Counted from the stretch's first letter, positions 1-56,232 are shown. The stretch is 64,000 nt of DNA from Anaeramoeba ignava BMAN (GCA_028826165.1 JAPDFW010000095.1:62001-126000); one strand, 5' to 3'. Numbers and translations are program-made. Notes: generated by a model from the sequence alone, not told the origin.

Positions 1-249
1 TAATAGTTCTAGCAAGAAGAAAAACAGTCATTAAAGCATAAAAAAGCTTTTAATTAAAAAAAATAAGTAAAATAAATAATAAATAAATAAAAAATTATAA
101 GCTTTTACATGCAAAACCCAAGAAGGAATTGTTGTATTTTCTTTTATTTTTTTAGTAATAATTCCATTTATCCAAAAAATTAAAATAAGTGCAAATAACA
201 TTAAATAAATTAATGCAGAAGCTACATCAATATAACTAGAACCATGCAT
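1..249 (-). CDS. N-terminal part of a multi-pass membrane protein (continues off the window start); intron 47-108
   Basis: Exon 1 MHGSSYIDVASALIYLMLFALILIFW...WVLH. A GTAAAA...AAAG phase-0 intron joins it to a second hydrophobic segment LFYALMTVFLLARTI. Confidence 0.6.
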
Positions 250-339
250 TGAATTATTATTTTTATAAAAAAATGGAAAAAAAAAATGAAAAACGGAAAA
301 TTATTTTTATTTTTGCTTTTTTTTTAAATCAAAAAAAAA

Positions 340-897
340 ATGGATTCAAATTCAATTATAAAAATCTGTACAAAAGGAAAAATTTCAAATTATGTTAAAT
401 ATGGAAACCAATTAATTGAAAATGGAAATAAAAAAATAACGATAGTTGGTGTTGGAAATGTGATGAATAAAGTTGTTTCTGTTGCAGAAATTCTTAAAAG
501 AAAAAATCCAAAATTTCATCAAATAAATTCGATTCAATTTGTTGAAATAGAAACTCCCTCGTAAACAATTATAAAAACACATAAAAAAATATTACATTCT
601 CAACAAATTAATCATTCCACTTTTTTTTACTGAAATCTAATTATTTTTTTTCTTCTTCAAAATTCCAAAAATCTTGATTAAATATTTTCAATTTTCAGGA
701 AAACTACAAAAAAAATACCTTCAATTTCTATTTTTCTATCATTAGAAAAACCCGAAAATACTGCGTTAGGTTATCAAGCACCTTTAGAAGAAGAGAAAAA
801 TGAAGAAATTCGAAGATTAGGTCCATTTATTGATATGAAAAAAGAACAAAAAAATTTTAATCAAATATCAAAAAAAAAATCTCAAGATTTTCAATAA
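340..897 (+). CDS. Alba-domain protein (Rpp25/Alba-like RNA-binding); intron 561-698
   Basis: Motif ITIVGVGNVMNKVVSVAEILKRK...HQINSI, then after a GT-AG intron KIPSISIFLS...GYQAP, typical of the Rpp25/Alba family. Stop TAA at 895-897. Confidence 0.8.
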
Positions 898-1126
898 TAT
901 AAACAAAAAAAATATCATTTCTAACATTGGATTATTTTTAAAATTTTGTCTATAATCATTTTTTAAAGAAGAAAAGATAATTTGAAATTGATTTTTATGA
1001 TTAAAATTTTTTCTATTTTGGAACAAATTATTACGTCATTCAAAAAAAAAAAATTTTTTTTTATTTTTTATTTTTTCATTTTTTTATTTTTTTTCTTTCA
1101 TTTTTAAAATAAAAAAAAAATAATAA

Positions 1127-4100
1127 ATGGATTCAAATCAAATTTTAAAAGAAGATTGGAAACAATTTTTAATTGAAGGTTGGAAATTTATTACAGCTAG
1201 TTCAGTTTTAAAAAGAAAGGAAATTATTTTAAATTTAATGAAATGTTTGTCAATGTCAGAAACAATGCCAATGCCAGATAAAACAATTTCTTTTTTTTCA
1301 AAATTAATATTTTCGACATTAGCAATTTATCATGAAAGAGAATCAAGATTAATTATTGAGAAATTAATTGAAGAATTAGTGAAAACTAAGTTTAAAACGA
1401 AAAGTTCAAAATTTTTTGTGTTATTTTTTTTGAATATGGTGTAAAATTCATTTTAAATATTAAATTTATTTTAATTTTATTTTAATTTCATTTTAATTCA
1501 TTTTAATTTATTTTAATTCATTTTAATTTATTTTAATTTATTTAATTCATTTTAATTTCATTTTAATTCATTTTAAATATTAAATTTATTTTAATTTCAT
1601 TTTAATTCATTTTAATTCATTTAATTCATTTTAATTCATTTTAATTCATTTTAATTCATTTTAATTCATTTTAAATATTAAATTTAATTCATTTTAATTC
1701 ATTTTAAATTTATTTTAAATATTAAATTTATTTTAAATATTAAATTTATTTTAATTTCATTTTAATTTCATTTTAATTTCATTTTAATTTCATTTTAATT
1801 CATTTTAATTCATTTTAAATATTTTAATTCATTTTAATTCATTTTAAATTTATTTTAATTCATTTTAATTTCATTTTAAATTCATTTTAATTTCATTTTA
1901 ATTCATTTTAATTCATTTTAATTCATTTTAAATCATTTTAAATCATTTTAAATTCATTTTAATTCATTTTAATTCATTTTAATTCATTTTAATTCATTTT
2001 AATTCATTTTAATTCATTTTAAATATTTTAATTCATTTTAATTTCATTTTAAATTCATTTTTAATTTATTTTAAATTTATTTTAATTTCATAAATTAAAT
2101 TCGTTTGTAAAAAAAAGAAACCCAAAAAATCCTATTCCAAAACAAAGATATATACAACTAAGATGGACTTGTATTGCTTTGGAAAAACTTCCTGAAGAAG
2201 AATTAAAATCTTTTAATGATAAAGAAAATGCATTCCTTCTTTCTTTATTTGGAAGTTTACTTACATCATTAATTTATCTCCCAAATAAAAAATTAGCAAC
2301 TTTATCATTCAATCTCGCAAAACATTGCTTTTATAATACAAAAATCCCTATTTTATTGATAAATGCTCTCAAAAATTTTGAAGATTATCGAATTATACAC
2401 CCTTTAATACAACTATTTTCATCGGTTCTTATTGAAAAAAACAAAGAAATTTTTATCAATGAACTCAAACCAAAATTACTAGAAATTTATACAAAAAATA
2501 TACTTCAAAGTAGAAGTCAATTTCAACACAAAGTTTTGGATTCATACTCCACTTTGCTTAAAAACATCACAGAAAAGGATTTCAGTGAAATATTACTTCC
2601 TGTTATCACTCGCATAATGAATCGAAATCCAGAAACTGCAATCCATCATTTACTTCCTTTATTCCAAACATTGGAGCTTGATTTAGATGCTCATTTCTCA
2701 GAAAATTTACTCCCAATAGTTATTGCTGAAATCAAATCAGAAAATCAACAACAAAAAAAACTTGCTTTTAGTATGTTCAGAGCAATTTTTAAAACAATGC
2801 AAAACAAAGAAGAAATGAAAAAAGGAATCAATGTTCTTCAAGAAATAATGAATCAGCCGAGTCATTGGGAAACAAGACACACAATTAGCAAATGTTTAAA
2901 AATAATCTTTAAATCACAACACGGTGCAGATTTATTTATTGATAAGATCGAATCACAACATCTCCAACAAATGAAAAAGGAAAAAGAACCAATAATCCTG
3001 GCTCAAATGATAAAATCAATTGCTTATGCAATTTTGAAAAAGGAAACAATTAGTGAAAATATTCAAAAGCAATTTATTCAGGGATTAAAAAGCAATGATG
3101 TGCAACAAAATAAAATTTATATTGATGGATTGTCTATCATTTCAGGCTCAAATTCCCAAAATTTCAACAAATTCTTTTTATCAGTAATCCCGTTTTTCAC
3201 CAAAATTCTAAAGAAAGATCTTTCTTTCGAAACATTTGTTGTTTCTCCGTTGATAATTTTCAAGATGGCGAAATATTCGGAAGAAATATCAGCAAAAATT
3301 AACAGTGAATCGATTTGGAAAATTATTCTGGATTCACACAAAACACGCAATAAAATAGAACAACTTAAATTGGATAGGAAACAAATTCTCAAGTATTCAA
3401 GCATGATTATCACGTTAGTGACGATATCCAATGAGAAAAGAAGCGCAAAGAATGCAGATGAAGATTTGGATTGTTGGAAAGATGAAAATTATCATGTTTT
3501 ATTTGAAAGAATTTTTGAAATGCTTATTGATCCAAATTGGGAAATTCGTAAGAATGTTCGCAATCAAGTTTTGAGATTGCAAAAAGACAATGAAGTCATC
3601 TCAAGTTCTCTTTTATCTTCGGGTGTGATGTTTCTAGAAAGGAAATTAACGGAAATGATCAAAAAAGAAACGGAAAAAGCAAAAGCAAAAATTTTAATAA
3701 AAATAGCAGCTAAAAAGGAAAAGAATAAGAAAGAAGAAGAACAAAAAACACAAAAAACACAAGAAAGTCAGGGTAAAATTCTGGCCAATCTTCTCGAATT
3801 GATTGCAACAGAAAAGGCAATTTCTGAACAAGATTCACGAGTGATTTCAGCACTAATATATGTTGCAAGTCATCCACGGGTTCAAGAACCAAGTTTGTGG
3901 TTCAAAATCAACAAAAAAAAAGTACTTGAAGAAAAAGTGCAAAAATTAAATGTTGAAGTCCACAAAAATATTCTAACGAAAATGAAAAAACTAATTGAGA
4001 TTTTGGAGCAAAATGACGAGTCGGCAATCAAAGAAACCTCTGAAGAACTTGAGGCGCTTGCTAATTCGTATGAGAGAATAAGCAAATTTTCATGGGAACA

Positions 4101-7100
4101 CTCAGTAAGACTTATTGTAAATGATATTACAGAACTTTTGAAGGAGCAATTACAGAAAATCAATTTGCTAAAGAAGGAAGATATTGATGTTTATAAAATG
4201 TCTTCAACAGATTTTGAGAATTTTTTGCAAAAAAGAACAGAAGAAACAAAGAATTTGAGAATAAAGGAGTTGAAGGAAAAACTCAACAATGAGAAGAAAA
4301 CGAAACAAAAAAGATCGAGAGGACAACGTGATCTGTATAAAGTGGAAGACGAGAAATGGGAGGAAGAACTTCGAAAGGAGCAACAAGTGAAAAAGATCAA
4401 AGAAGAAGAAAGCCAAATGGCGAAAGAAATATACACAGAATTAAGCGAGGAAATGAACAAAACTCGGCGCAAAATCAAAGGAATGGAAAATGCAATTAGA
4501 GTCTCTTTGTCTATTTTGCTTACTCCATGCAACATAAACAGTAAGAGATTCTATCTCGAGTTTGGACAAAGTGTTGCCAAAACTGTTTTTAATTTTATGA
4601 GCTCGATTGTATCTTATGAACAAAGCAATTTATTTATAAACAAAATGATGAGCGGAATTCCAAGTAATTATATCAAATATCGCAACCGAATTTTACGAGG
4701 ATTAAATGTTTTGTTTGCAAACGATTTATGCGAGAAAATTGAAGGAGAACCAAATATTCGGGAAATTATGCGGAGTTTGGTGTCTATGATTTATTCGGAA
4801 TGCTTCAATGAAATGACTCAAAAAGTGACTCCTTTGGATAGCACAACTTTTACTCTTGTTTATCCGTTTGCAAGATATATTTTGACGCTTCCTTATTTAT
4901 ACGAAGTTCATGAGAAATGCATTTCGTTGGTGTTTTTCCACACCGATCCAAAATTTGTAATTGCACGCAAAGAAATTTCAGGTCATCTTCTTCAAGTTCC
5001 TGAAAATACACCAAATCTTATTGAGCAAACACAGAAATGCATTGTTGGTTTGTTTGAGAAATGGAAAATAATAGAAGATCTAGAATATATTTTTGAAGGG
5101 CTTATCTCGACATCTTCTGTTATTCGTATAATCTGTTTGCAGACATTGCTGAAAAGCGAGGCGATGAATATTGAAATTGAGAAAATCAAAAACGAAATGG
5201 TGTTGCAGAACCAGATTATGAGCGAAAATAACGAAAACCAAATCCAAAATATCAAGGATACCTTCCAATATTTTGACAACAAAAAAGCTGCGAATATTGT
5301 CATATCAAGTTACGATATAGAAAGTGAAGAAAACAGAAAAACAGCGAAGATCATTTTGGAGAGATTGGGATTCTTGGAGTTTGCAGGATCAAAAAATATG
5401 AAGAAATTCGATGACATGATTGTGGAAATTTGCGCTCATTTGAGCTCAAAAGATTTGAATATTCGGGAAATGTCAGCACAAGCAATTGCAGAAGTTGTGA
5501 ATATGTCGAATTCGCTTGAGTTTTTAAAGTACATTTTCGATGGATTTACAAAAGTGTATATGGATTTAATGGAAAAGGAGACAGAAGATAGATCAACAGA
5601 TGATCTCGGAATTGAGGTTCATCTCGACAACGAAGATGAAGATGAAAAAAGCGGGGATGAAAACGAAAATCTCAGGAAATTTGGAGATATTGGGGAAAGA
5701 TATCTTGAATTGCGGCATGGAATAGCAGTTGCGCTCAAATACATGGCGCAGAGAGGATTATTTAGCACTGAGAATATGATATGCGATGCACTGGAATTCT
5801 TAATAACAAAAGACCATGCGCTTAGTGAGTCTATTGAGGAAATACAAAAGGAACTCCTGGATCTCGGGACAGAGCTTGTGGACAAGAATCCGAAAGAAAG
5901 TGTTTCTCAGGGAATGAAGATGATGCAGGATTTCCTGGCGCGAAAACCGGAAAATACAATTGAAGATGATAAAATGAGGGAAGGAGCGCTTATCATTCTT
6001 GGTGCGATGGCAAAATATGAAACGGACATGAAGAAATTGGAGCAAATTTTCAAACAACTTTTGGATGGATTGGTGATTCCCTCAGAAATTGTGCAATCAA
6101 CAATATCGCGTTGTGTGAGTTCATTAGTGCCTAAAATAACAAGTGAATTAGTTGATTCAAGCATGAATTTTCTGCTGCAATCTGCGATCCAAAACAAGAA
6201 ATATGGTATCCGAAGAGGAGCATCATATGGGATTGCAGGGATGGTTTTAGGACTGAAAATCACATCACTTACAAAATACGGGATTCTCGAGAAAATTGAA
6301 GAAGCAGGAAAATCTCCTAGCGGGATAAATAGACAAGGTGGATTGACTCTTATAGAGATTCTCTGTTTAGTATTAGGAAACAAATTCCAGCCCTATTTAT
6401 CCAAAATTTTGTCTCAGGTTTTGAACGCGTATGGCGACAGTGATTCTTCAGTGGCAAAACTTGCCGAACAAACATCGCGAGCAATGTTCACAATATTGCA
6501 AAAAGCAGGAGTGAAATCGATTCTTCCGCTTGTCATTTCAGGATTAGACAACGAGTCATGGAAAACCAAAATTGCCAGCATTGAGATGCTTGGAACAGTT
6601 GCGTTCTGTGCACCAAAGCAACTTTCACAAACAATGCCAATGGTTGTTCCGTTACTTGTGAATTTGATTCGTTCTCCACGACAGGAACTGCGTAAATCGG
6701 CAACGAAAAGCTTAAAATCAATCAGCGAAGTGATCCAAAACAAGGAAATAAAAGAACATGCACCTGCGCTTCTTTCTGCGCTCGAGGATCCGTCAAAACA
6801 CTTGAAAAATGCGCTTGATGCACTTCTTTACACAACATTTGTGAATTACATAGATGCGCCGAGTTTGGCGCTTGTATTCCCAACAGTTCTTTACGGACTA
6901 AATCAAGGACAAACAGAGATTAAAAAATCGGCTTCTCGAGTTGTTGGCAGTTTGTGTTCTTTGTCGCGACCCAAAGACATTCAGCCGTATATCTCAACAA
7001 TATTACCGAAACTCAAGCAATTACTTTCAGATCCAATTCCAGAAGTTCGAGGCGATTCCGCGCTTGCATTATCTAAATTAGTGCGTGGATTAGGAATGGA

Positions 7101-10100
7101 GCAATTCCCCAGTCTTCTTGAATGGCTCTTACAGCGTATTAAAACTACAGAAGGCCATATTGAGCGTAGTGGATCTGCACAAGCATTGGCGCATATTCTT
7201 GGTGTGATTGGAATCGAGAAATTGGATCAGCTTCTTCCGGGATTTGTCACATCAATAACATCACAAGAAGCGCCAATCGAAGAGCGAGATGGCAGTATGA
7301 GTTTGCTGCGTTTTTTGCCTATGGCATTCCGCGACGGTTTGCATGCACATGTAGACACTGTTCTGAGAGCAGCAATCAAGGGTTTGTCCGATGAAAGTGA
7401 ACTCGTAAGAGACACTGCCATGCGCACTGGAATTGCCATTATTGAACAATACTCTCAAAGCGGTCTTTCTAGTCTTCTTTCTCAATTTGAGGTCTCTGTT
7501 TTCGACCAAAATCCCCGCATAAGAATAAACTCTCTCGAGCTTGTTGGCCAGCTTCTTTATCGTGTCTCGTTTTCCACAATTGAAAAAAAAGAAGCAAATT
7601 ATTTTGGAGATGACATCTTTATCAAACCGATTATTGATTCTGAAAATACCAACGAATCAATTGAAAAAATCCCGAAAAACGAGAAGAAAAAGAGCAAAAA
7701 GAAAATCAAAATAACGCGATCAAAAGAAAAAGATGATTACACACAAGATGTGCTTCTGAATGCGCTTGGCGAGGAAAAATTCAAGCGTATTCTTGCGGTG
7801 ATCCACATCTCTCGTTGCGATGAAAATATGAATGTCAAACGCGCAGCATCTCTTTTATGGAACCGTTTTGTAACGAATCCCGCAAAAACATTGAGACAAA
7901 TCACGCCGACTGTTTTAAAAACCACTCTCGAGATGCTCCAAATCCAGGACATCTGGCTCAAGAAGCTTGCAGGAGCAACAATCGGGGATCTGATCCGCAA
8001 AATGGGATCGACTATTCTGACCTCTATTCTCCCGCTTTTTGACGAGAATCTCGAGTCTCCAGATCCTTCAATTCGCCAGGGTGCTTGCATAGGTCTCAGC
8101 GAAGTGATCTACTCCTCGGGAAAACCTGCTCTGTCAAAATTCATGGACAGAATCGTGAAATACGTGCGTATCGCGATATGCGATCTTGATGAATCTGTAT
8201 CCGACGAATCCGCAAATACCTTCGATGCTTTGTATTCTGTTTTCGGCAGTATGTCTGTCAATGCGGTTCTTCCAGAAATCATTTCCATGATTGCCGATCC
8301 AGAAAGTCGCGAGCGTGGATTAATGGGATTGCAGAAAATTCTTCTCAAAAGAGGATCTGTTGTTCTCTCGTATCTTGTGCCTCATCTTCTCTATCCCAAA
8401 GTTGATTTTTATAAAGCTTTGGCAATTGAAAAACTTGTTGGTGTCATCCAGGAAAACTTACCAGTATATATCGACAAGTTTATTCCTTCTCTTGTGGAAG
8501 CGATTGCGATTGAATCAATTGATGAGACAAAAGAGAATATCAAAGAAACCAAAAAGACAAAAAAATCAAAAAAGAATTTGAAGAAATCAAAAGACGAATT
8601 AACATTCGAGAGTCAAAAAATCGAAATTCCGAAGGAAATCATCTCCAAAGAGCAGCTTTCAACCCAAGCCACAAAGGCCGCAAATGCGCTTGTTGTTGCG
8701 GTTCCTTCTTCGGGAGCTACCAAGCTTCTTTCGGCACTTTTCAAATTATTTTCCCATAAAAATCAAGCCTACCAACTTGCAAGTATCCAACTTTTGTCCG
8801 AATTCTGCAAAAATCCAAACATCAAACTTGGGAATCATTTAGAGGTTATTTTCAAGGCAGTGTTCCCACTTTTCACAAACAAAAACGAGAAGGCAAGCAC
8901 TGCCGCATGGAACGTTATTTCGGTGATCACAAAAACCATTTCTGTGGAAACCATTTCGAATCATTTCCACCAAATCAAAGACACAATCACACAGCTTGTC
9001 ATGTCGTTCAACATCCGACTTCCGAACGAAGAGAAAATCCCAGGATTCTCAGTTCCAAATGCGTTTGTTCCACTTTCTGCGCCGATTATATGGGGAATCT
9101 CAGAAGGAATGAACGACATCAAAGAACAAGCAGCAATTCTTGTTGAGAAATTTGCAACTTATTCGCAAATCCAATACTCCAAAATGCTTTTGATGAAATT
9201 TCTTGGACCGTTAATCCGTATTGCTCCTGAGAAAATCACGTTGGATGTTAAAATATCAATTCTTTCCGCAATTCTTTGCATTCTGAAAAAATCAGGTCCG
9301 CTTTTAAAGCCCTATTTCGTTCCCATTCAGAGCACATTTATCCGCTCGATCAACTCATCTTCGATGAAAATACACTCGATTGTTCTTGACGGACTGACGA
9401 TTCTGAGCCAGCACCAGCAGCGGCCAGAGTCTCTTTTGATTGAATTCTACAAAGCAATCGAGCCTAATTCAGAGTATTTCTCATCCGACACAGTTGTTCT
9501 CCAGGATTCTATATTAATCATGCTGCGGAACATTATCCGAAATGCTGGCGCAAAAATCAAGGATGATATTCTCCTTAAATTTATGCAGTTCTTCATCAAA
9601 CACACAAGCTCCAGTGAATCAAGTTTCCGGAAGTCTCTTGCCAAAACTTATGGCGTTTTTTTCAAATTTATTAAGGATAAGAAAACAAAATTTGACCAAA
9701 TTAACGAGATCATTGAGAACGTGACAAATTTCTTCAGCAAAATTTCCAACCAACAACTTCCAAGTGATCTTGATACAGAACAAGGACTAATCGCTATTCT
9801 TTTCTTTATCACCAAATACAACGCCTCTTTTGTTCAATCTGACGATCTTCTTTCCAAAAAAATTGCTCATGTTGTTTTCCAATTATTACAAGCTGAAAAA
9901 ATTCCAAATCAACAATTCGGAACAAAAATTGCGTTCAAATTATTAAGTCGAAATAGCTCTGATTTGAAAAAGGAAATTTCGGAACAATTGATTTCATTGA
10001 TTACAAAAAATATTTCAAGTAAATCAAGTGAAGTTTCAACAACTTCAATGCAATTTTTCCGCAAAATTTCTGCGGAAAATGATTACTATTCCAATTTTGA

Positions 10101-10368
10101 ATTACCAAAAATTGCAGAACCAATTCTTACAATTGCCAAAAGTATCAATATTGATTCAAATTCAAGAATGATTGCTGCAAGAGCTTTAATTGCTATTTTC
10201 CGTTTTGATAAAGATCAACAAGTTATTGATTCTTATTGCAAAAATTTCCCCAAATTGAAAAAAAATAATTTGGTTGAATTTCTTGAGACTTTATTATTAA
10301 AATTAAAACAAAACAATTTTGAAACAAGTGATTCTGATGGAGAAAAATTAGAGAGTTTGGAAAAGTAG
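1127..10368 (+). CDS. GCN1: eIF2-alpha kinase activator GCN1 (HEAT-repeat protein); intron 1441-2117
   Basis: About 2850 aa after splicing. GCN1 motifs RRGASYGIAG, WKTKIASIEMLGTVAFCAPKQLS, FVNYIDAPSLAL, LSDPIPEVR, ERSGSAQAL, GLSDESELVRDTA, RQGACIGLSEVI. A phase-2 GT-AG intron joins exon 1 in frame. Confidence 0.93.
1445..2092 (+). repeat. Intronic tandem repeat, ~10-11 bp unit TTCATTTTAA(T)
   Basis: Dozens of near-perfect TTCATTTTAA copies fill the GCN1 intron. Confidence 0.9.
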
Positions 10369-10459
10369 AATTTTAATTTTAAACAACAAAAATTTAAAAT
10401 CAAATCAAAATTTAATAAAAGAAAAAAAAAACCAAATTTTTGTTCCACTTTTTTTTTAA

Positions 10460-10555
10460 GAAAGAATAAAGAAAGAATAAAGAAAGAATAAAGAAAGAAT
10501 AAATAAAGAATAAATAAAGAATAAAGAAAGAATAAAGAAAGAATAAATAAAGAAA
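10460..10555 (+). repeat. Intergenic 12-bp tandem repeat AAAGAAAGAATA
   Basis: Direct reading of the sequence. Confidence 0.8.
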
Positions 10556-10609
10556 ATAATTAGTAATTTTCAATTTTAAAAACGTTATTTACAAAAAAAA
10601 TTTTTTTAA

Positions 10610-10645
10610 TTTTTCATTTTTTTCATTTTTCATTTTTCATTTAAA
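10610..10645 (+). promoter_or_regulatory. Initiator-like TCATTTT cluster upstream of the CysRS ATG (example of a window-wide motif)
   Basis: TTTTCATTTT occurs within ~10-60 nt of most start codons, on the coding strand. Confidence 0.6.
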
Positions 10646-13600
10646 ATGCAAAAAGAAGAAACAAATTATTGGATTCAACCAAAAGGAGTTTCAAAAGGAT
10701 TAAAAGTTCTTAATAGTTTAACAAGAACAAAAGTTTGATTTTATTCAAAATACTTTTTAAAAACTTTAAAAACTTTAAAAACTTTAAAAATAAATTAATA
10801 AGCATTTAATAAATAAATTAATAAATAAATTAATAAATAAATTAATAAATAAATTAATAAATAAATTAATAAATAAATTAATAAATAAATTAATAAATAA
10901 ATTAATAAATAAATTAATAAATAAATTAATAAATAAATTAATAAATAAATTAATAAATAATTTAATAAATAATTTAATAAATAAATTAATAAATAAATTA
11001 ATAAATAAATTAATAAATAATTTAATAAATAATTTAATAAATAATTTAATAAATAATTTAATAAATAAATTAATAAATAAATTAATAAATAAATTAATAA
11101 ACAAATTAATAAAATAAAAATTAATAAATAATTTAATAAATAAATTAATAAATAAATTAATAAATAAATAAATAAATAAATAAATTAATAAATAAATTAA
11201 TAAATAAATTAATAAATAAATTAATAAATAATTTAATAAATAAATAAATAAATTAATAAATAAATTAATAAATAAATTAATAAATAAATTAATAAATAAT
11301 TTAATAAATAAATTAATAAATAAATTAATAAATAAATTAATAAATAAATTAATAAATAAATTAATAAATAAATTAATAAATAAATTAATAAATAAATTAA
11401 TAAATAAATTAATAATTTAATAAATAAATTAATAAATAAATTAATAAATAAATTAATAAATAAATTAATAAATAAATTAATAAATAAATTAATAAATAAA
11501 TTAATAAATAATTTTAATAAATAAATTAATAAATAAATTAATAAATAAATTAATAAACAAATTAATAAATAATTTAATAAATAATTTAAAGGTTGATTTT
11601 ATTCCAATAAAAGAAGAAGAAGTTGGATTTTATGTTTGTGGACCAACTGTTTATGATTCTTCACATTTAGGACATGCAAGGTAATTAAAATTAAAAATAA
11701 AAGAAAAATAATCAATTTTCAAATTAAAAAATTTTTATTAAAATAAACAAAATTTAGAACATATATTGCTTTTGATGTTATTAGAAGAATATTAACTGAT
11801 TATTTTGGTTATAAAGTTAATTTTGTTATGAATGTAACTGATATTGATGATAAGATAAGTTGAATCAAATTTAAAAATTAAAATTAAAATTAAATTAAAA
11901 TTAAAATCGGATAAAAAATTAAAATTAAAATTAAAATTAAAATCGGATAAAAAATTAAATTTAAAATTAAATTAAAATTAAAATTAAAATTAAATTTAAA
12001 TTTAAAATTAAAATTAAAATTAAAATTAAAATTAAAATTAAAATTAAAATCGGATAAAAAATTAAATTTAAAATTCATTTATAAAATTAAAATTGAATTA
12101 AAATTCATTTATAAAATTTAAAATTCATTTATAAAATTCATTTATAAAATTAAAATTAAAATTAAAATCAAAATCAAAATTAAAATTAAAATTAAAATTA
12201 AAATCAAAATTAAATTTAAATTTAAAATTCATTTATAAAATTAAATTTAAATTTAAATTTAAAATTAAAATTAAAATTAAAATTAAAATTGAAATTAAAA
12301 TTAAAATCGGATAAAAAATTAAAATTAAAAACAAAATTAAAATTAAAATTAAAATTAAAAATTAAAATTAAAAATAAAATTAAAATTAAAATTAAAATTA
12401 AAATTAAAATTAAAATTAAAATTAAAATTCATTTATAAAATTCATTTATAAAATTAAAAAAAATATTTAAAAAAACACATTATTTTACGATCTCGAGAAA
12501 ACAACCAACCATTCACTGAACTTGCCCGGAAATATGAAAAAGAATTTTTTGAGGACATGCAAGAACTGCACGTACTTTTCCCAACAGTTATAACCAGAGT
12601 CTCAGAATACATACCCGAAGTTCTCGACTTCATCCAAAAAATTATCGAGAACAAATACGGATATGAAAGTAACGGCAGCGTATATTTCGACACACACAAG
12701 TTCTGGCAAGACTACAAATACGCGCAGCTGGAGCCTTCTTCTATTAACGATATGGAAAAACGAAAGGAAGGAGAAGGTGTCTTATCACCAAATATTGAAG
12801 ATAAAAAAAATCCGGAAGATTTTGCGCTCTGGAAAAAGTCTAAAGAAGGAGAACCCAAATGGGACTCGCCATGGGGTCTTGGTCGCCCAGGATGGCATAT
12901 AGAATGTTCAGTAATGGCAAGTTATATTCTTGGTTCTTTGTTTGATTTCCATGGTGGTGGTGTCGATCTCAAGTTCCCCCATCACGACAACGAAATTGCA
13001 CAGTCTATTGTTAGTGCCTCCCCAATATAATCTTATTCATATCTATTATTGTCTTGTTTGTTCATGTTGTGGATTGCCTCAATTATGACTTTTGGATTGA
13101 GACATTTCATGACAAACAAAATTTTACTTCATCAAAATTTTCACCATTTGTTTTTTCATCACAAAAATCTTTTTTATACTCATTCGCAATTTCTCTTGTT
13201 TTCTGTTTCGTAGGCTCGTTTCGATTATCCGCAGTGGGTTAATTACTTTCTGCATTCTGGACATTTATTTATTGAAGGAAGAAAAATGTCAAAATCGGAG
13301 AAGAATTTTATCACGATTAAAGAATGCTTAAAAGAATACACTTGGGTGCAGATCCGCATTTTCTTTCTTCTCCACAAGTATGATTCCCCGATAGATTACT
13401 CGCAAGCCGGGATGAAACACGCGGTGGAAATCACGAGAATTTTTACGGAGTTCTTCAACAACGTGAAGATTTATTTGCGAGAAAAATCATGGACTGACAA
13501 CATGTACTTTGGAGAGACTGAAAGCAAACTAACGAGCACATTCACGACTCTTCGTAACCAAGTGCACGAGGCGCTGTGCGACAACTTCAACACGCAGGAA

Positions 13601-14275
13601 GTGATGAGGATTCTTGGAGAGCTTGTCAAAGTGACTAACGTCGGAATTAATGACAACGTTAAGCCTTATGTAGTTAAAAATATCGGCGATTTTATCACGA
13701 AAATTTTCGCCGTTTTCGGAATTACTTCAAGTGATGATATTGGGTTTATTCAACAGCAACAAGAACTTATTTCTCCAATTATGAATATTTTTTGCTCTTT
13801 TCGTGATGAAATTCGATCCAAAATTCGATCCAAAAATTTCAACACTTTACTCGATGTTTGTGACAAGGTTCGTGATGATGATCTTCCCCTCGTTGGTATC
13901 CGTTTGGAAGACAGGACAGACCAGCCTTCTGTATGGAAATTCGATGATAAAGATGTTCTTCAAAAAGAAAGAGAACAAAAATTAAAAATGAAAAAAATGA
14001 AAGAGGAAAACAAACAAAAACAACTTCAGAAACAGCGAGAGAGAATCATGAAAGGAAAGCTGAAACCACAAGAAATGTTCTTGCATTTGACTGATAAATA
14101 CTTGAAATTTGATGAATCTGGTTTCCCTATTCTTGATATCAATGGAAATCCCTTATCTAAAAAACAAATTAAAAATCTTCAAAAACAACAAAATCAACAA
14201 AAGAAACTTCATCAAGCTTATTTAAAATTTTTAGAAGAAGAAGAAAAGGAAAAAAATAATCAAAATCAAAATTAA
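10646..14275 (+). CDS. CARS1: Cysteinyl-tRNA synthetase, cytosolic; introns 10733-11591, 11681-11757, 11855-12478 (AT-AC), 13010-13213
   Basis: Spliced product contains [19 protein letters not shown] (HIGH motif), NVTDIDDK|[55 protein letters not shown] and KMSKS. Confidence 0.96.
10790..11588 (+). repeat. Intronic 12-bp tandem repeat ATAAATTAATAA (CysRS intron 1)
   Basis: Long, nearly perfect array. It produces the spurious INLF-repeat ORF on the minus strand. Confidence 0.9.
11855..12478 (+). other. AT-AC spliceosomal intron (ATAAGT...ACAC), 624 nt, filled with AAAATT repeats
   Basis: This junction restores the conserved CysRS DIDDK-IILRSRE in frame with ORF 12557. No AG was seen between 11860 and 12495. 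Confidence 0.85.
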
Positions 14276-22031: not shown

Positions 22032-25000
22032 ATGTTCCAATTCTTAAACATAAAAAACATTTCTGAAATATCACCAACATCACCAAGAATACAATTCACA
22101 TCAGTAGCAATATCTAGCACAAGAATTGTAATAGGAACCAACACTGGAAGCGTATTTTATTATTCGAGAAAAAAACCACATCATTTAATAGGAATGTTTA
22201 CAGTTGAAAAAACTGGAGAAAAAATAAGATTACTAAACTTTAGCCCAGATGAACTAATGATTGCTTTCACTTCAGGAAAGCAAAATTTAAATGTTGTCAA
22301 GTTTATTTCTGAGGGAAAAAAGGAGCAGATTGTTCTGCATAATATCAACACAGAAAATGCTATTACATCCCTTGTTTGGAGCGATTCTTCACAGTATTTA
22401 TATTATGGGGATGAAAAAGGAGCTATTTATATTAGCAAAATTGCAGGCAAAAAAAGACTTGGGAATTTTAAAAAAAAAGCAAATAAAGATTTTGCCATTT
22501 TTCAAACAGACTCAAAAATTGTTCAAATGGATTTTTCTCAGGATAATCTGCTGGTTTCATCGCTTACAAAAGCAATACTAATACAAACACTTCCCATTCC
22601 AAAAAACAAAAACGACTTCCATTTAAACGAACCGATCCAAATTGGATCCAAACTTAGAGAAGGAGCATTTGGCGCTTGTTTTAGTGCAAATCCTAACGAG
22701 CTGCCTATTGTTATTGCAAGTCGACCCGGATATCGAGTCTGGGTCGCTGATAAAATCACAGGCAAAGTCTTGCAAACAATCAATTTCCGCAAGGCTTTTG
22801 AAAAAACCCAAGAATCAACTGTAGAATCAATTGAAAATCAAATAGAAATCGATCAAGATCTCCCCAACGATCTGTTTTTTAAATTCCAGGCTAAAAAATC
22901 TTCCCATTTTGGAAAGCTTTTTTTGATTGATAATTTTATCATTTCCTTTGGAAAGAAATCAGGAATCGCGATTCTTGATTTGACAAAGGCTTCCGTTCTT
23001 TTCCACTCTTCAAATACAACCATTTTGTCTTCAAGTTTCTTCAAAAATTCAGCCTTTATTTTATTCAGAAAGGACAAAACAACGCAACTCACACAATTTA
23101 AATTCCAATCAGCAAATAATTGGCTGAAGAAGCAAGAAAAACAAGTTTTTGATTTCAAATCATTTGATTTCGTTTCTCAAGAATTTTCCAACTCGCCAAA
23201 CTTCGAGGAAAAAGTGTTGCGTATTTTAAGCGTTATTGAGAAATACAAAATCAAGGAATTCACCTTGTTGATGAATTTCCACAAATTCTTGTCAAAGCAC
23301 GAGGATCTCAATGAATCCCTGTCTAAAAATCAGCAAATTATTCAATTTCAACATTTGGTTGAAAATTTGGAAAAGGAAAAGAAAAAAGAAGAAGAAGAAA
23401 GAATGAGAATTGAAAAGGAAAAGCAAGAAAAGAAAAGCAAGAACGCGAGGAAAGAGAGAGAAGAGAAAGAGAAGAGCGCCAAAAACAAGAAAAAGAAAGG
23501 CAGGAACGCGAGGAAAAGGAGAGACAAGAACGCGAAGAAAGGGAAAAGAAAGAAAGAGAGGAAAAAGAAAGAAAAGAAAAAGAAAAAAGAGAGAAAAAGG
23601 AGCAAAAACGAATTGAAAAGGAAAGAAAAAAGAAGGAAAAGAAGGAAAAGAAGGAAAGAGAAGCACTATTAAAAAAGGAAAAGGAAAAGGAAGAAAAATT
23701 GAAAAAAGAAGCACAAGCCAAAAAAACAACTCTCATTTCAATAGATTCTCCAACTCAATCACAACAACAACAAAGCACACTCTCAAAATCTAAATCAAAA
23801 TCAGAGTCAGAATCAGAACCAGAAACCCAACTTAAATCTCAATCCAAATTAGATTCAAAAATACAATCTCAATCACAACTCAAAACTCAGGAATTCATCC
23901 CTAATGATTTTTTACGCGAATTGGAAAATTCAATTCAACCCCAATTTATTGTTCAATCTGATGAACAGAAATCCAAATCAGATCTTGAAAAGTCGCAAAA
24001 TGAAAATTTACAACAAGATCAAACAGTTAACAATGAGGAAATTTCTGTTAAAAAAAACTCAATCAACGAAAAAGAATCCAATCAACTTTTGGAAAAGGAA
24101 AGTGAATCAATTCTTGCGAATCAATCTGACAAAAATACAAACACAACAACAATACAATTTGCAGAAAATCATCGTAAAACCAAGTCTCAAGAAGATATCC
24201 AAAAAATTCGGCCGCAAACTTCTTCAACTCCAAATATCAACGATTTATCCAAGAAATTAAAAGAACAAGAAGAAGAAAAAGAACGAGAAATGAAACGAAA
24301 AAAGCAAGAAATGATCACGCAATTCCAGCAACAAATGAACAAATATTCCAAGCAAATTTCAGATCTTTCACAAAGAATCATTCAAGGATGGAGAAATCAA
24401 TCAAATCAATTTGATTTCCGAGTTCCCGATCATGTTAATTTATCAAGCCAGTCAGATATCATGATCTGGATGGAAAAACTCGAAAGATTCCGCAAGTTTC
24501 TTTCCTCTCCACAAGTTCCGTTACCCCAAGAAATTAGCCTCACTGAGGCTCATGAACCCACAGATGACGATATCATCATATGCACTTTTCATTTCCAGAA
24601 ATATCTTTATTCGCTTGAAAACAATGAATCTTTGAAAACAAAAGGAAGACATCGACTCAAATATTATTGATTGGATCGCAAAATATTTGGATTTTGTTGA
24701 TTTTGATAAAGTGTTCCAAATTTGCAACTCAAAATTATTCTCCAAATCAATTGATTTTTTGATTAAACAGAAATTTGAGTCAACAAACACATCGATAACA
24801 ATAAACAACATGTTGAAACAGCAGAGCAAATCAATAGCTCCTGTTTTGAAAATCATTGATGATTCTGGGACTGCATATTATCTCTATCATTTCTTAGTCA
24901 CTTTGCTGAATTTAAATTGGAAAGAAACCGCCAAAAGATGCGCTTTATTTTATCCAATTATTCTGCCATTTAATATCAAAAAAACGTTGTTGAAAAATAG

Positions 25001-26358: not shown

Positions 26359-28232
26359 TTAATCCCAATTTTTTAATATCTCTTTTGTTAATTTTTTGAT
26401 ATCTTTATCTTTATCATTTTGTTTTTGAATTTCATTCACTTTGTTTTTTAAATCTAATTTTCCTGCTTCTAAAATTTATTTTAAAAAAATTATTTTAAAA
26501 AAATTTAATTTAAAAATTTAATTTATAAAAAAATTTCAAACCTTCTTTTGAAACTTTGAAAATCTCAAACAACTTCAAAATTGCAACTTGGGTTGTATTC
26601 TGTTCTTCTGGTGATAAAGTTTTAGCACAAAAATCAATTAATTCTGTTCTTTTTTTTTGATCTAAATCTAAAAAGAATTTCAATCAAAACAAATATTTTT
26701 TTTATTATTATTAAATTTTAATTTAAACTTTAATTTAAATTTTTTTTTACTTGGATCTTTTGTAAAAATCTTAACTAAAGCTTCTAAACCAGGATCATAA
26801 ATTTCATTATTCTTTTCTGATTCTTTAATTGCTGTTAATATTCTGTCAATTCCCTTTTCTCCAATTTCCTTAATTTTATCTTTAAATTAAAATTTTGAAA
26901 ATTTTATTTTTAAATAGATTGAAAAATTTTTTTTGTTTTAAAAACCTTCTTGATTTGAATAAAAATTTAATAAGAAACATCCATTTTTTTGAATTGATAT
27001 AGTTTTTGGAAAAGATTCCATTGAATCTAAAATCTTGGAAATTGAAATATCTCTTTCTTCTTTTTCTAATAAAATTATTATTATAAATTTTTAAATTTTT
27101 AAATTTTCAAATTTTTAAATTTTCAAATCTACTTTCATCTTTGTTTTCCTTATTTAATCTAACTCCCTTCAAAAGCTTTTTTACTTCATTTTCTTCTCCT
27201 TTTTGAGGATCTTGATTATTTTCCAAATTTTCTTTTGGTTTTTCCATCGTTTTTTTATCATCTTTAATATTTTTAATTTCATTTTGGATCTTCTCAAGTT
27301 CAGTTTTCAATTTTTCTTCTTGTTGTTCAAGACCTGAAAGTTTCGTTGTCATCTCAGTAATCTTTTTTTCATTTTCCTTAATTTTTGTGTTTTTTTCATT
27401 CTCAAAAAATTCCATAACAACATTCATTGGAAAATAAGAAAGTCTTTTCAGTTCTTTAATTTGACTGTCTGAAATTGTTTTCAAATTCTTTAACTTGGTC
27501 CAAAATATCGAGGATTAATTTTCCATATGAAATTCGAATTTCTGGATTCATTGTTTGCTGTTGTTTTTTGTATTGCATTTCTTGACTTTTTTCATTTTTA
27601 CTCAACCATATTGTAATCATTTTAATCAAAGATTTTTCATATGTTTTTTCAGTGCTATATCCAAGTAATTCAATCAAAGAAATCAACTCTTCTTGAGTTA
27701 ATGTTGGGACTTTTTTTCCGAAATTTTCCCTGTCTTCATAAATTAATTTGGCACAAACTGGATCGAAGTCTCTTAAACTGATTGTTTTTAATTTCAAATA
27801 ATAATTGAATGCATTATCTTTATTTAAATTTTCTTGAATTTTCAATTCGATTTTTTCTTTAACAGTTTCCAATCCAAGTTGATCAGCAAAATCATACATT
27901 TTTTCGAAATTATTCATGTCAATATCAATGTGAAAATTGTAAAGGAATTGAATAATTGGTTCAACAATTTCTGGTTCAAAATCTCCAAATGAAATTTCAT
28001 TTACTCCTCTTTCTCTGATTTTGACGTATAATTTTGGAGCACGAGCATCAATGAAAATTTGATGGCATCGAATTGGTTTTTTTGATTTTCCACAATATAT
28101 TGTAAAATCTGCTCGTGATCTTTGTGTCAAATATATTGATCCAATTTGTTCTTTTGCTTCTTTTTCAATTTTTTTTTGAATTTTGGATTGTGAATTTGAT
28201 TGTACTTTTTTTCCTGCTAATGAAGGATCCAT
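26359..28232 (-). CDS. BTB/POZ-domain protein with coiled coil and spliced C-terminal helical region (4 GT-AG coding introns; frameshift near 27470)
   Basis: ADFTIYCG...IRCHQIFIDARAPKL...IIQFLY BTB motif. Canonical introns can be traced down to TAA at 26359-26361. Confidence 0.7.
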
Positions 28233-33751: not shown

Positions 33752-36700
33752 TTAAATTCTTCTTATTAATTTCTCAATTTCTTCTTGTGAACTTAATTCT
33801 GATGCAAGAAAAAGTAAATTTTGAAAATCTTTTTCTTGGAAAAAATTTTGAAACTTGGAAATAATTGAAATCATTCTTTCTTCAATTTCATCATCAATTA
33901 ATTGAGTTTCAATAACTTGAGCAATAATTGAAATAATTTTAGGAAGATTTTTGAAATTTTCACCAATAAAAACTTCATCTTCTTCCTCAATAAACTTGCA
34001 AAAAAGATCATATGTTTTTGGAGATTCTTCCTCATCAAATGAAACAGGAAGATAAGAAAGCCAAGCTTGTAAACTTTGTTGATATTGAATATTTTCTCTT
34101 TGAAAATAACAAATTTTTCCAAGTGCACAAATAGCATTATCAGTTGGTGAAGCATTTGATTCTTCACGTGAATCCTTCTGCAGAATAATTGAGTTTAATT
34201 TTTGTGTAATTTCTTGGCAATACGGCCCAAATATTTTGCCTAATTTCTCAGCACAAACGCCAAGACAATAAACAGTTGCTTGTCTTAAACCTTGATCTTG
34301 ACTCAACATAAACTTCATACTTGGTTCATAAAAAAAATCATTCCAATATTTCAAAAACTCATTTTCTCCTCCATATTCCACAATATCCACAAATACACAC
34401 ATTGCCATTTGCTTATCATAATCGCGTGTATTCGGCTCCAAAAACGAAAGATAATATTGCAAAATGTTATTATGGAAAAAATCCAGAAACACTTTTTTGT
34501 GGAATTTCCAAAATTGTGTCATTGTTTCGACAACTAAATATGAAATTTCATCTTCTGTTGATAATTTATCTGACATTTTCTTCTCCAAAGATTCGTGATA
34601 ATGATCTTCGTCCAAATAAATTGTTTGTAACTTCGATTTTCTTTTGATTGAAGACTCAATTACTAAAGGAATGATTGGAAGCAATTTCTCTGCAAATTCA
34701 TCACTTATTGTTGTTTTAACATATCCAAGAATTTCTCCAATACTTTGTATCAAAACTGAGATAACATCAGGAATTTTTTCCTTTTCAAGACATTTGCACA
34801 ATTCAATAAGAAATTGATGAACAAATTCCTCTCGAACTTGAGATAATTCCGAGTAAATGAGCTGATTGTTATTATCATTATTAATTTCAATTTTCAATTT
34901 TGAATCCAAATTTGAATTTTCTTTTTGTGAATTTTCTTTTTGTGAATTTTCTTCCTCATAATTTTCCATCATTACTTTCACTAACTCTGTCCCACACATT
35001 GATGCAAAAGTGCGTGTTGATTCATCATAATAGTAATTTAACAACGGCATAATTGAATCAACTATCATTCTTGAATAGGGAAGAATATTTGATTTGAGTT
35101 GCTCAATTAATTCGTTAATAACTGAAACTGCAACTTGTTTTTCTTCAATTTCTGCAGTTTTAATTTGTATTTTCTGATTCCGATATAAAAGAATTCCATG
35201 AACAGTATTTCCTTGAATTTCTAAATTTTGTTGAGTGGGATTAATTTCATCCTCAGATATAACATGTATTTGAGGTTGTTGAGTTGCTTTTTCCAAAATG
35301 AACGGGATGATTGAAGGTAAAAATGTCCCAAAATGATTGGGAATTGCTGATGCAAGTCTTGCCCATCCTCTTAAAAGATGCAATAGTTGTGGATCATCAT
35401 CTTCCAAATTACTTGATTGAATTTTAAGTAGTTCTTCAATAACTACATCTGAATCTTTAACGAAAATTTCTTCACCAACAGCTTCAGCAATAATTGTGAT
35501 GCATTCGATAAGTTTTGCTCTTAAATTTCTGTAATTTTTATCAGTAGCATTTGAGAATACTTGGGTTAAAAACGGGAATATTGAATCATAAAACTTTTTT
35601 TTATGGAATTTTAAAAATAATTTCTATAAATGAATTTTTGAATTTAAATTCCTTTTTCAAAAATTACTTGAGAAAATGATTCTTTTGAAACAGAAGCAAA
35701 TGAAGAAATTGCAGAAACAATTTGTTCTTGCAATTTAACAGACTCTTGTTGAATCATTTCAACAAACTTTGGCATAAACAATTCTAAATAAGGAGTAATA
35801 ATTTCTTGAGAAATTTCTTGACAAAAAAAAACTAAAGAAAGAAGTGTATGAAATCTAATAACTTCATAAGAATCACTCAATAAATTTAAAAGTTTTGGTA
35901 AATAATCTTCATAATAATTATTCTGAAATGTTTGCACAAAATCCGAACAAAGTCTTTGTGTTGCAATACATGCTGAAAGACGTACTCGAGGATGAGAATC
36001 CTCAAGAGAAAACGAAATCATATTTGCAATCTCATCCAAAAATTCAAGCATTATATCATGACAACCTTCCCCAATTGCTGATAATGCTATTGCAATTCCT
36101 GACCGTTTTTTCCAATCGTCAAGATTTTGTATTTTTTGAAACTGATTTTTTAATATTTCAAAGACTGGATCTCCAAAAGAAAGAGACATTCTTTCAAGAA
36201 CATTTTCTCCAACATTAAATTCTGTTATTATTGATGATTCAAGATCCTTGAGTTTTGAAACGTTATTTGGATTCAATGAGAGAATTACATGATTTTTTAA
36301 TGAGTATAATTGAAATTATCTTATTTTTTGATTTTTTATTTACAAAATTATTTTCCCAATCTTCATTTTCTTCATCAATATTAAAAATCATTTCAAGTGA
36401 TGTATTAAATAATGATTCAATAAAATTTTCTATTCTTTCTGCAATTCCTGTTGCATTTTCAGCAAAGGTAACAAGAAATTCTAATGAAAGAAATCTAATT
36501 TGTATTTTATTGAAAATAATTTTTAATTTTTAAATTAATTTTTAATTTTAATTTTTAATTTTAATTTTAATTTTAATTTTAAATTTAATATTAATTTTAA
36601 AATGAATTTTGATTTTAATTTTAAAATGAATTTTAATTTTAATTTTAAAATGAATTTTAATTTTAATTTTAAATTTAATTTTAATTTTAAATTTAATTTT

Positions 36701-37881
36701 AATAATTAATTTGAATTTTGATTTTAATTTTAATTTTAAAATGAATTTTAATTTTAATTTTAATTTTAAATTTAATTTTAAATTTAATTTTAATTTGAAT
36801 TTTAAAATGAATTTTGATTTTAATTGGAACAATAAATATCTTGAGGAAATTCATTAGAAACTGAAATTTTAAAGAAAATTTGACAAAAAGAATTATAATA
36901 TTGTCGATAAAATTGTGGAAGAATTGAAACAATATCAGTTAATTCTTGAATAATTTCTTCAATTAAATCCATCTTTTGTTGATTTGTTAATTCAAAAAAT
37001 AATTGTAATATTGAAGGAATAAAAACAGTAAATGATTCTCTTTTTTGTTTGTTTAAAATCAATATATATTTGTTAAAAGCTTTTGTTGCAAAAAATCGAA
37101 TTTGAAGAGAATTTTTTTCTGAAAAACTTTGTTTAAATATTTCAAAAATTTCATTTGGAATTGATTTAATCATTTCTGGTATTTGTAAAGAGAGTTGTTG
37201 AATTAAATATAATATATCAACTTGAAGTTGTTCATTTGAATCATTTACATTTTTAATAATAAATTGTATTAAATCATCCCATTTTTCTAAATAATTTTAA
37301 TTTTAATTTTAATTTGAATTTTATAAATAATTTTAATTTTATAAATAATTTTAATTTTAATTTTAATTTTGGTTTTAATTTTAATTTTGGTTTTAAAATG
37401 AATTTTTTTAATAGATACCAGAATCATAAGAAGTAGAAGCTAAAACAGAAATTGCATCACAAACTCTTTTTCTTAAAAAATTATTTGGTTGAATTTGAAA
37501 TGTAATTAAAAGTTGATTTTGAATTTGAATTTGATTTTCTCTATTAATATTTTTCCAATAAATTTGAGTTGGTGAAATTGCTTGTCTAAAAAGAATAGCT
37601 GATAATAATCTATTCTATTTTTAATAAAATTATAAAAAATTTTAAATTTAATTTTTTTAACGTTTTTTTTTCTTTTTTTTCTTTTTTTCTTTTTAATAAA
37701 GAATAAAAAATACTTGTTGAGAATTTGATTCTTGTAAAACTTTTAATAAAAATTCTAAACATTGAATTGAATTATTTTGTAAAAATTCTGTATAAATTTT
37801 TTCAGCTTCATTTCTTTTAAAATTATTTGTTTCTAAAAGTTGTGTTAATAATTCTTCAAATTCTTTAATTTGTTTTTCCAT
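33752..37881 (-). CDS. IPO5: Importin-5 / karyopherin beta-3 (Pse1/Kap121 family); 5 introns, one AT-AC
   Basis: Spliced motifs NFKRNEAE, IRFLSLEFLVTFAE, ALSAIGEGC, DSHPRVR, LRAKLIECITIIAEAVGEEIF, DDDPQ, IKTAEIEEK, LRQATVYCLGVCAE, PTDNAICALGKI, WLSYLPVSFDEEE. Confidence 0.9.
36502..36839 (-). other. AT-AC spliceosomal intron (ATATTT...AATAC), 338 nt, filled with AAAATT repeats
   Basis: CAA G|ATATTT...TAC|AA ATT AGA gives NEFPQ-E-IRFLSLEFL. The nearby GT combined with either nearby AG gives a frameshift or a TAA. Confidence 0.8.
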
Positions 37882-54225: not shown

Positions 54226-56232
54226 TTTTGATTTTTAAATTTGTTAATTAATAAATCAAATAAATTTGGATTTGTTTGATTTAATTGAAAATAATCAATT
54301 CCTGTTTCTAGTTCATCAATAATTTCTTGTGTAATTTCAATTTCATCTTTAATTTGATTTGAATAAATCCAATATTCAAATAATTGAAATGATTTATTAC
54401 TTAATTCACTATAATCTGTAACTTTATTAGATTTATCTTCAGTTACAGATAAAAACATTCCTCGATATAATTCACTTCTCATTATTAATATTAATTTTGG
54501 AAATTTATATTGTTTTTCTTTTCTTTCAATTATAAAATCTTTTTCATTTTCATTTTCATTTAAATAAATTTTTTTCATTGTTTCTTCAATTTTTTCATTT
54601 GAATTTATAATTTCTTTAATTTCAGAATATAATTTTGGATTTATTTTGGAATTATTTGAATAAATCATTTCAAATATTTGATTTGATTCTTTAATTGATT
54701 TACTTGAAATAATTTCTTGAAGTTTTTCAATTTCATTTTGATTTTGATTTTGATTTTCATTTTGATTTAATCTATATTTCAATATTAATTTATGAGCTTC
54801 AATTATTTCTCCATTTTCTGTTTTAAATGAAATATCACAAAATTCTTTTCTTTTAAATAATTTTATCAAATCTTCTTCAAGATTAGAAAAAGGAGGAGAA
54901 TAATAAATAAATGATTTATTAAATCCACAAGAAAAATGATAATTGGAAATATCTTCATTAAATCTTAATTTAGGAAGTTTGATTTGAATTGGAATTGATT
55001 GATCATTTGTATCTCCAGTTCCTAATTGACCATAATAATTGTATCCAAATCCTATTAATTTTGAATTGGATGTTAAAATCAAAGTATGATTAATCCCAAC
55101 AGAAAAATCAAGAATATTATCATCATTTTCAAATAAAGATTTTTTGATTTCAGTAAATTCATAAGTATCTTCATCTTCATCTTTGCCAAGTCCATTATCT
55201 TCCCAGCCTCCACATGAATAAAGTTTTCTTTTTGGATTTTGATTTTCATTTTCAACCAACATTATTGAAAAAGCAGCTCCACATTGAATATCAATTATTT
55301 TACCTTTTGGAATATTTTGGATTTTAGTTAATTTTTTGATTTTTAGTTTTTTTCTTTTTGATTTTCCTAATCCAAGTTTCCCATATTGATTATTACCACA
55401 TCCAAATAATTCTTGATTTGAATTTAAAAGGAAAAACTACATAAGAACAAATTCCTGAAAATATTTTAGAAACATTTTTCATCATTAAAATTGGTTTTTG
55501 TGTTTGTTTAAGTACTATATAATTAGAACCAAGTTGACTAGATTCATTTGAACCAATTCCATAAACATTATTATTTGAAGTTAATAAGTAAATTGAAAAT
55601 CTTGAACAAACAATATCTTGAATTATTCTATCATTTTTATCTTCAATTAATGATGAAATATTGATAAATTCTTTTGGATTTTTTGGATTAATATCTCTTC
55701 CTTTGGCAAATACATTTCCTTCTTTTGTTAAAATAGCTTCATTTTCAAAACCAACAGTTACTTTTTGAATATTTTCAATTTGGATTTTTGAAGGATTTTG
55801 TTTTGAATCATTTAAATATTCTATTGCTTTTCCATTTTTAAAAAGGAAAATTGTTGAAAAAAAACTTGTTGAAATTTGTTTAATTTGTTTTTCATTTTCA
55901 TTTTCATTTTCATTTTCATTTTCAATTTCATTTTCATTTTCATTTTCATTTTGTTTTATTATTTGAATTTCTTTTTCTTTTTCTTTTTGTTTTATTATTT
56001 GAATTTCTTTTTCTTTTTCTTTTTCTTTTTCAAATTTCATTTTTATTGGTTTTAGTATTCCATTTTCAATTTGATTTTGATTTTGATTTTGATTTTGATT
56101 TTGATTTTGATTTTGATTTTTGTTTTGGTTTTTGAATTGAATTTTAATTTGAATTGGTTTTATTATTGAATCTTGTTCATTTTCAATATGTTTTGGGTAT
56201 TTATTCCAACCAAAAAATAAACAATCATTCAT
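54222..56232 (-). CDS. RCC1-BTB protein, copy H (frameshift near 55430; expanded N-terminal low-complexity insert)
   Basis: ORFs 55393-56232 and 54222-55262 are the two halves of one colinear paralogue. Confidence 0.78.

Follow-up and report, generated by a model that had tools for sequence, protein, structure and literature searches.

The third intron of the cytosolic cysteinyl-tRNA synthetase (CysRS) gene of Anaeramoeba ignava BMAN begins with AT and ends with AC, and these borders are confirmed by an assembled transcript in which the flanking exons are joined. Intron 3 is very probably a genuine spliceosomal intron of a single-copy gene, one that the major (U2-dependent) spliceosome would remove, which would make it an AT-AC intron of type II. 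The gene lies in a 64-kb stretch of DNA, the whole of which was analyzed and is called here the window. Its sequence is that of a eukaryote, with an extreme A+T content. According to the published description of the species, A+T makes up 80.65% of the whole BMAN genome and 91.86% of its introns; the A. flamelloides genome is about six times larger, and proteins of the two species have a mean identity of 37% (PMC11550330).

Gene structure and borders of intron 3

The plus strand of the window encodes at 10646-14275 a CysRS of 621 residues in five exons, a gene model that was compared with the databases exon by exon. Exon 1 (10646-10732, from the ATG to ...TRTK), whose 3' end appears in the transcript contig as a loose end ahead of 11588, is followed by intron 1 (10733-11591), a GT..AG intron that consists of a (TTAATAAATAAA)n array, across which the contig runs from exon 1 to 11592. 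Exon 2 (11592-11680; VDFIP...HLGHA-R) is defined by the sequence and the transcript contig, and intron 2 (11681-11757; GTAATT..TTTAG) by a GT..AG contig joint that skips its 77 nt. Exon 3 (11758-11854; TYIAFD...NVTDIDDK) precedes intron 3 (11855-12478), which is 624 nt long, lies in phase 0, and is delimited by the contig pieces together with protein continuity. Exon 4 (12479-13009; IILRSRE...) is followed by the non-repetitive intron 4 (13010-13213; GTTAGT..CGTAG), also a GT..AG joint in the contig, with 204 nt skipped. Exon 5 (13214-14275) includes the TAA stop and finds its best match in the CysRS of A. flamelloides (46% identity). Both motifs of a class I CysRS (PF01406) are present, since exon 2 contains HLGHAR and exon 5 contains KMSKS, and the catalytic domain is homologous to PDB 9yru with an E-value of 6e-67. 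Exon 4 has a copy number of one in the 42.8-Mb assembly, so the contig does not derive from a processed copy within the assembly.

The GC content of the gene changes from 16-21% in exons 1-3 to 35-47% in exons 4-5, with the step exactly at intron 3; an upstream open reading frame of 2729 codons (2179-10368) has a comparable GC hump in mid-gene. Because both the N- and the C-terminal sequences of the protein are clearly orthologous to those of A. flamelloides, the step does not represent a foreign graft.

Exon 3 ends with ...GAT ATT GAT GAT AAG at 11854, and the first six bases of the intron (11855-11860) are ATAAGT. The last six (12473-12478) are AAACAC, after which the sequence continues from 12479 with ATT ATT TTA CGA TCT CGA GAA (IILRSRE). 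The intron thus opens with ATAAGTTGAATC and closes with AAAAAAACAC. A direct repeat of 2 nt marks its borders, the AT at 11855-11856 recurring just past the intron at 12479-12480, so that the same mRNA would also be compatible with TA..CA or AA..AT borders; AT..AC is the sole reading that agrees with a known border type.

Evidence from RNA comes from the one public run found to contain the gene, in which 83% of sampled words from exons 4 and 5 were present. Among the contigs covering 11560-13400, a transcript contig of 1889 nt matches the window in four pieces (11588-11678, 11756-11854, 12479-13009 and 13214-13400), across which its own coordinates run unbroken from 1808 to 901. Position 11854 therefore adjoins 12479; this joint was read from the adjoining contig pieces, and those of introns 2 and 4 were tabulated as GT..AG. 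The depth of the contig, 171.6, is a single mean over its whole length and cannot reveal a local shortage at the junction, and the RNA basis amounts to a single assembled contig of a single run, in which minor isoforms are invisible. Depth over the non-repetitive intron 4 was zero, which indicates that the run behaves as a transcriptome, and no contig on 11560-13400 carried an unjoined form at either boundary of intron 3. At 12955 the contig has C and the genome T, a synonymous change (GGT to GGC) that may distinguish strains or alleles or may stem from an error in the assembly.

The protein is equally continuous across the junction, exon 3 aligning with residues 79-110 of PDB 9yru_A and exon 4, from its first residue on, with residues 111-289. 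The residues II directly follow the DxDDK motif in 50 of the 51 homologues that have it, as they do here (DIDDK|IILRSRE). We enumerated all frame-preserving GT-AG, GC-AG and AT-AC pairs around the intron. The only nearby in-frame GT-AG pair joins a donor at 11859-11860 to an acceptor at 12496-12497 (both plus strand), giving the product DIDDKIKNNQPF from which the six residues ILRSRE are lost. Both sites are unused in the transcript contig, and this candidate junction was rejected. The 624-nt AT-AC intron and the damage that its GT-AG competitor would do had both been described in an earlier note, made from the sequence before any comparison with RNA; the site enumeration and the protein alignment bear these statements out, and the contig carries the predicted junction and not the canonical one.

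The body of intron 3 (11874-12455) is a microsatellite in which (AAAATT)n is repeated about 92 times and which carries seven copies of the variant AAAATTCATTTATAAAATT, and the 3' end of the intron (12456-12478, TAAAAAAAATATTTAAAAAAACAC) is A-rich, has no pyrimidine tract and ends in CAC. The variant was found within (AAAATT)n arrays at 12070-12455 and 63288-63421 of the window and at G000:C112:169500-171800. It recurs in introns of unrelated genes, among them a proteasome gene in which the intron concerned is an ordinary GT-AG one, and in intergenic DNA; it is a genome-wide satellite family that is not confined to AT-AC introns.

Splice-site type and competing explanations

The donor of intron 3 was set against 51 GT-AG introns of the same genome, eight from the window and 43 from elsewhere. 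The latter belong to CCT, HSP70 and proteasome genes located by Pfam searches of the genome and were resolved by continuity of profile coordinates together with manual checks; eight junctions of CCT, HSP60 and HSP70 genes with missing exons were left out of the sample. These introns define a donor consensus MAR|GTAAKT (M=A/C, R=A/G, K=G/T) and A/T-rich acceptor regions that end in WAG (W=A/T) and are devoid of pyrimidine tracts. The 5' splice site of intron 3, AAG|ATAAGTTG (11852-11862, plus strand), departs from the U2-type consensus only in having A where G is usual at +1. Its score without +1 and +2 is 4.49 bits, which is the 100th percentile and above all 51 GT-AG donors, a pattern of compensation on record for non-canonical sites of the U2 type (PMC1557818). 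When compared with the U12 donor ATATCCTT, the same site ATAAGTTG agrees at four of eight positions and does not qualify as a U12 donor. No box resembling TCCTTAAC occurs 10-20 nt before the 3' end of the intron, within the last 23 nt, and the nearest TTCATTTAT motif belongs to the satellite and stands about 30 nt from that end. The same sequence criteria, a strong U2-type donor despite AT-AC borders, define AT-AC type II introns in the work of Sheth et al. 2006 (PMC1557818). Two further statements of the earlier note hold, that ATAAGT is a U2-type donor in all but its first base and that the intron has neither a U12 donor nor a U12 branch site. Its proposal that the major spliceosome removes the intron is supported by these sequence criteria and remains a prediction.

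Removal by the minor (U12-type) spliceosome through a degenerate 5' splice site is the alternative that survives best, and we regard it as unlikely. AT-AC borders are classically U12-type, and a U6atac-like gene with a AAGGAGAGA box is present in the genome (G000:C71:58882-58994). However, the donor has no TCC core for pairing with U6atac and U11, the branch box is missing from its expected place 10-20 nt before the intron ends, and no donor in the whole 51-intron sample matches the U2 type better once +1 and +2 are masked. U12-type introns moreover tend to avoid phase 0, the phase in which intron 3 lies.

The genome itself probably encodes a minor spliceosome, given the U6atac-like gene, which has the boxes AAGGAGAGA and GGUUAGCA and scores 29.9 bits against an Rfam gathering score of 33. 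The presence of minor-spliceosome snRNAs was a point on which the earlier note had looked to the genome for a check, and the outcome was divided: the U6atac-like gene was found, and U11 and U12 were not, in searches whose controls were also silent. Rfam models for U12, U11 and U1 gave no match in the whole genome, the search controls being equally silent, and naive patterns for the box with which U12 binds the branch site, and for the 5' end of U1, matched only coding or unrelated DNA. A pattern of ATATCCTT and TCCTTAAC separated by 70-100 nt matched once, in a coding-like sequence. The donor motif RTATCCTTT is six-fold commoner in the genome than its reversed control (1550 against 259 occurrences). 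This excess was rejected as a count of U12 introns, as 20 sampled sites resemble the antisense of coding AAAGGATAT; it is codon bias. The metamonad Monocercomonoides has been reported to be without a minor spliceosome (PMC6759080), and the U6atac-like gene hints at the existence of one in a metamonad.

A different explanation would preserve GT-AG borders at the same positions and attribute A11855 and C12478 to assembly errors. The window does contain several frame breaks, perhaps indel errors of a long-read assembly. Yet the suspected errors elsewhere are indels and not substitutions, and two independent substitutions would be needed exactly at +1 and -1, yielding the one pair of borders known for mutual compensation. 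GT and AG are intact in all 51 other introns, which makes paired errors at +1 and -1 very unlikely, and a second AT-AC candidate lies within the same window. We consider this explanation highly improbable.

The frame breaks, none of which involves an intron, lie at about 23672-23699 and 24670-24687 and, on the minus strand, at about 27456-27484 and 55262-55393. They affect an HPS5/Vps-like gene, a BTB gene and a copy of RCC1-BTB, which either are pseudogenes or have been assembled with indel errors in homopolymers.

Just as improbable is an origin of the joined form outside splicing, from an allele or subpopulation devoid of the microsatellite block or from template switching by reverse transcriptase. 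The AT repeat at 11855-11856 and 12479-12480 and the unstable (AAAATT)n array that forms the intron body would favor such events, but a homology of 2 nt is too short for typical template switching, and a deletion would have had to fall exactly in frame while re-creating the conserved DIDDK|II junction. Exon 4 is present only once in the assembly, and unjoined contigs are absent from both boundaries of the intron. Weakest of all, and scarcely credible, is the proposition that the canonical, in-frame GT11859/AG12497 pair makes the main mRNA and that little of the product has the AT-AC form, since the AT-AC junction is in the only transcript contig over the region, the GT-AG product would lose six residues whose spacing is conserved in all homologues, and its donor TAA|GTTGAA is weak.

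Known AT-AC introns and a possible mechanism

The CysRS locus of A. flamelloides, onto which the protein of that species was mapped, has four GT-AG introns, two of which share their positions with introns 2 and 4 of A. ignava. Segment DIDDKII lies there inside one exon. Intron 3 is absent from the orthologue and is consequently lineage-specific, having been either gained in A. ignava or lost in A. flamelloides.

AT-AC introns of the U2 type ("type II") have been on record since 1997 and make up about 0.008% of human introns (PMC1557818). Intron 3 shares with the U2-dependent examples in human SCN4A/SCN5A and TAF2 (PMC1557818) its AT-AC termini, a U2-type 5' splice site that is stronger than average (here ATAAGT), and the absence of a U12 donor and branch box; its host is a conserved housekeeping gene. 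It differs from them in coming from a metamonad protist with introns of 92% A+T and in having a 580-nt microsatellite as its body. Like all introns of its genome, and unlike the human ones, it has no pyrimidine tract. The sister species has no intron at this position, and the U2 dependence of intron 3 is a prediction from its sequence. With U12-type AT-AC introns it shares the AT and AC termini and a genome that seems to encode U6atac, whereas it has no ATATCCTT and no TCCTTAAC 10-20 nt from the 3' end and stands in phase 0.

The closest parallel to its sequence is experimental. In engineered yeast and human mutants (PMC1557818), G1>A and a last-base change of G>C constitute the same pair of changes that separates intron 3 from GTAAGT...CAG, and this identity explains why both of its ends deviate jointly. 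In contrast to these mutants, intron 3 is a natural, fixed allele of an essential gene and is apparently spliced efficiently. In U2-type pre-mRNAs of yeast and human, the block caused by G1>A is rescued by the last-base G>C (PMC1557818 and references there), and the first and last intron bases touch during the second splicing step (work cited in PMC1557818). Contact between the terminal bases and rescue by G>C together make AT-AC the one non-canonical pair that the major spliceosome accepts.

On the basis of established knowledge, U1 would pair with AAG|AUAAGU everywhere except at +1, and the near-perfect match at the remaining donor positions would offset that mismatch. At the intron termini, an A-C contact between the first and last bases would then replace the non-Watson-Crick G-G contact of GT-AG introns.

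A full-text search of the literature found no mention of Anaeramoeba together with AT-AC or U12 introns. U2-type AT-AC splicing in Anaeramoeba is thus apparently previously unreported; the intron class itself is known and rare.

Frequency of AT-AC introns and implications

The window contains about 9-10 introns: four in the CysRS gene (three GT-AG and the AT-AC intron) and five in a gene for importin-5 (four GT-AG and a candidate AT-AC intron), the remaining genes being single open reading frames or showing frame breaks without introns. The importin-5 candidate (36502-36839, minus strand) has the borders AAG|ATATTTAT...AATAAAATAC|AA and is supported by homology. Exon 3 extends to position 272 and exon 4 resumes at 273-274 of a profile built from 40 homologues, which were taken from a search of 1.84 billion representative proteins among which the organism's own importin is absent. 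Only the AT..AC borders give a sensible product (NEFPQ-E-IRFLSLEFLVT), and enumeration of the pairs found no GT-AG pair that preserves the conserved LSLEFLVT block. Donor AAG|ATATTTAT falls at the 88th percentile of U2-type donors. The intron may alternatively be an AT-AG variant with donor ATTTCCTC and a product from which six residues would be deleted.

Elsewhere in the genome, all 43 sampled introns were GT-AG, with zero AT-AC and zero GC-AG, which sets a 95% upper bound of about 7% and indicates that AT-AC is not a common class here. Several junctions that had seemed to offer no GT-AG pair, in a CCT gene (C84) and in proteasome genes (C137, C112), were rejected as AT-AC candidates, being products of profile overrun or missed mini-exons; all are GT-AG.

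The genes surveyed yielded some observations of their own. Two proteasome-subunit genes contain introns of 3674 and 5598 nt, very long by the standards of this genome and both GT-AG (G000:C89:112500-117900 and G000:C65:78100-85300, respectively). A CCT subunit gene (G000:C100:69600-74800, minus strand) is for the most part one open frame of 1045 codons, interrupted between profile positions 370 and 367 by about 800 nt of in-frame sequence that is a possible intein; Anaeramoeba has been reported to be rich in inteins (PMC10710043). Two tandem HSP70 paralogues (G000:C60:574500-580000, minus strand) have two intron positions in common, and the near-identical intron ends at these positions point to a recent tandem duplication.

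The two AT-AC introns of the 64-kb window, one confirmed by RNA and one supported by homology, lie 24 kb apart, a coincidence hardly to be expected if the rate were that of human, 0.008% (PMC1557818), at which it would be close to impossible. AT-AC introns may therefore be moderately enriched in this genome. A frequency of U2-type AT-AC introns of about 0.1-2%, one to two orders of magnitude above that of animals, is an appreciable possibility that we put at somewhat less than even chances, and a rate of 0.1-1% is compatible with two such introns once the selection of the window is allowed for. A candidate ATAAGCTT AT-AC donor elsewhere in the genome may be a further pointer in this direction. 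If the raised rate is true, the major spliceosome of this organism would be unusually tolerant of A at the first and C at the last intron position, and introns may also have been gained recently out of AAAATT satellite DNA. A genome-wide elevation would moreover make the organism a useful natural system for studies of terminal-nucleotide proofreading. Should the rate not be raised throughout the genome, the intron would be a curiosity that reveals no new mechanism. Its main practical effect is on gene annotation.

In this genus, GT-AG borders alone served as the published criterion for calling eukaryotic contigs (PMC11550330). Pipelines that admit GT-AG introns alone would mis-model the essential CysRS gene, by truncation or by loss of six conserved residues. 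Intron 3 adds a natural and apparently efficiently spliced U2-type AT-AC case from a deep-branching anaerobic protist, and it supports the view that pairing of A at the first with C at the last intron position is tolerated by major spliceosomes across eukaryotes.
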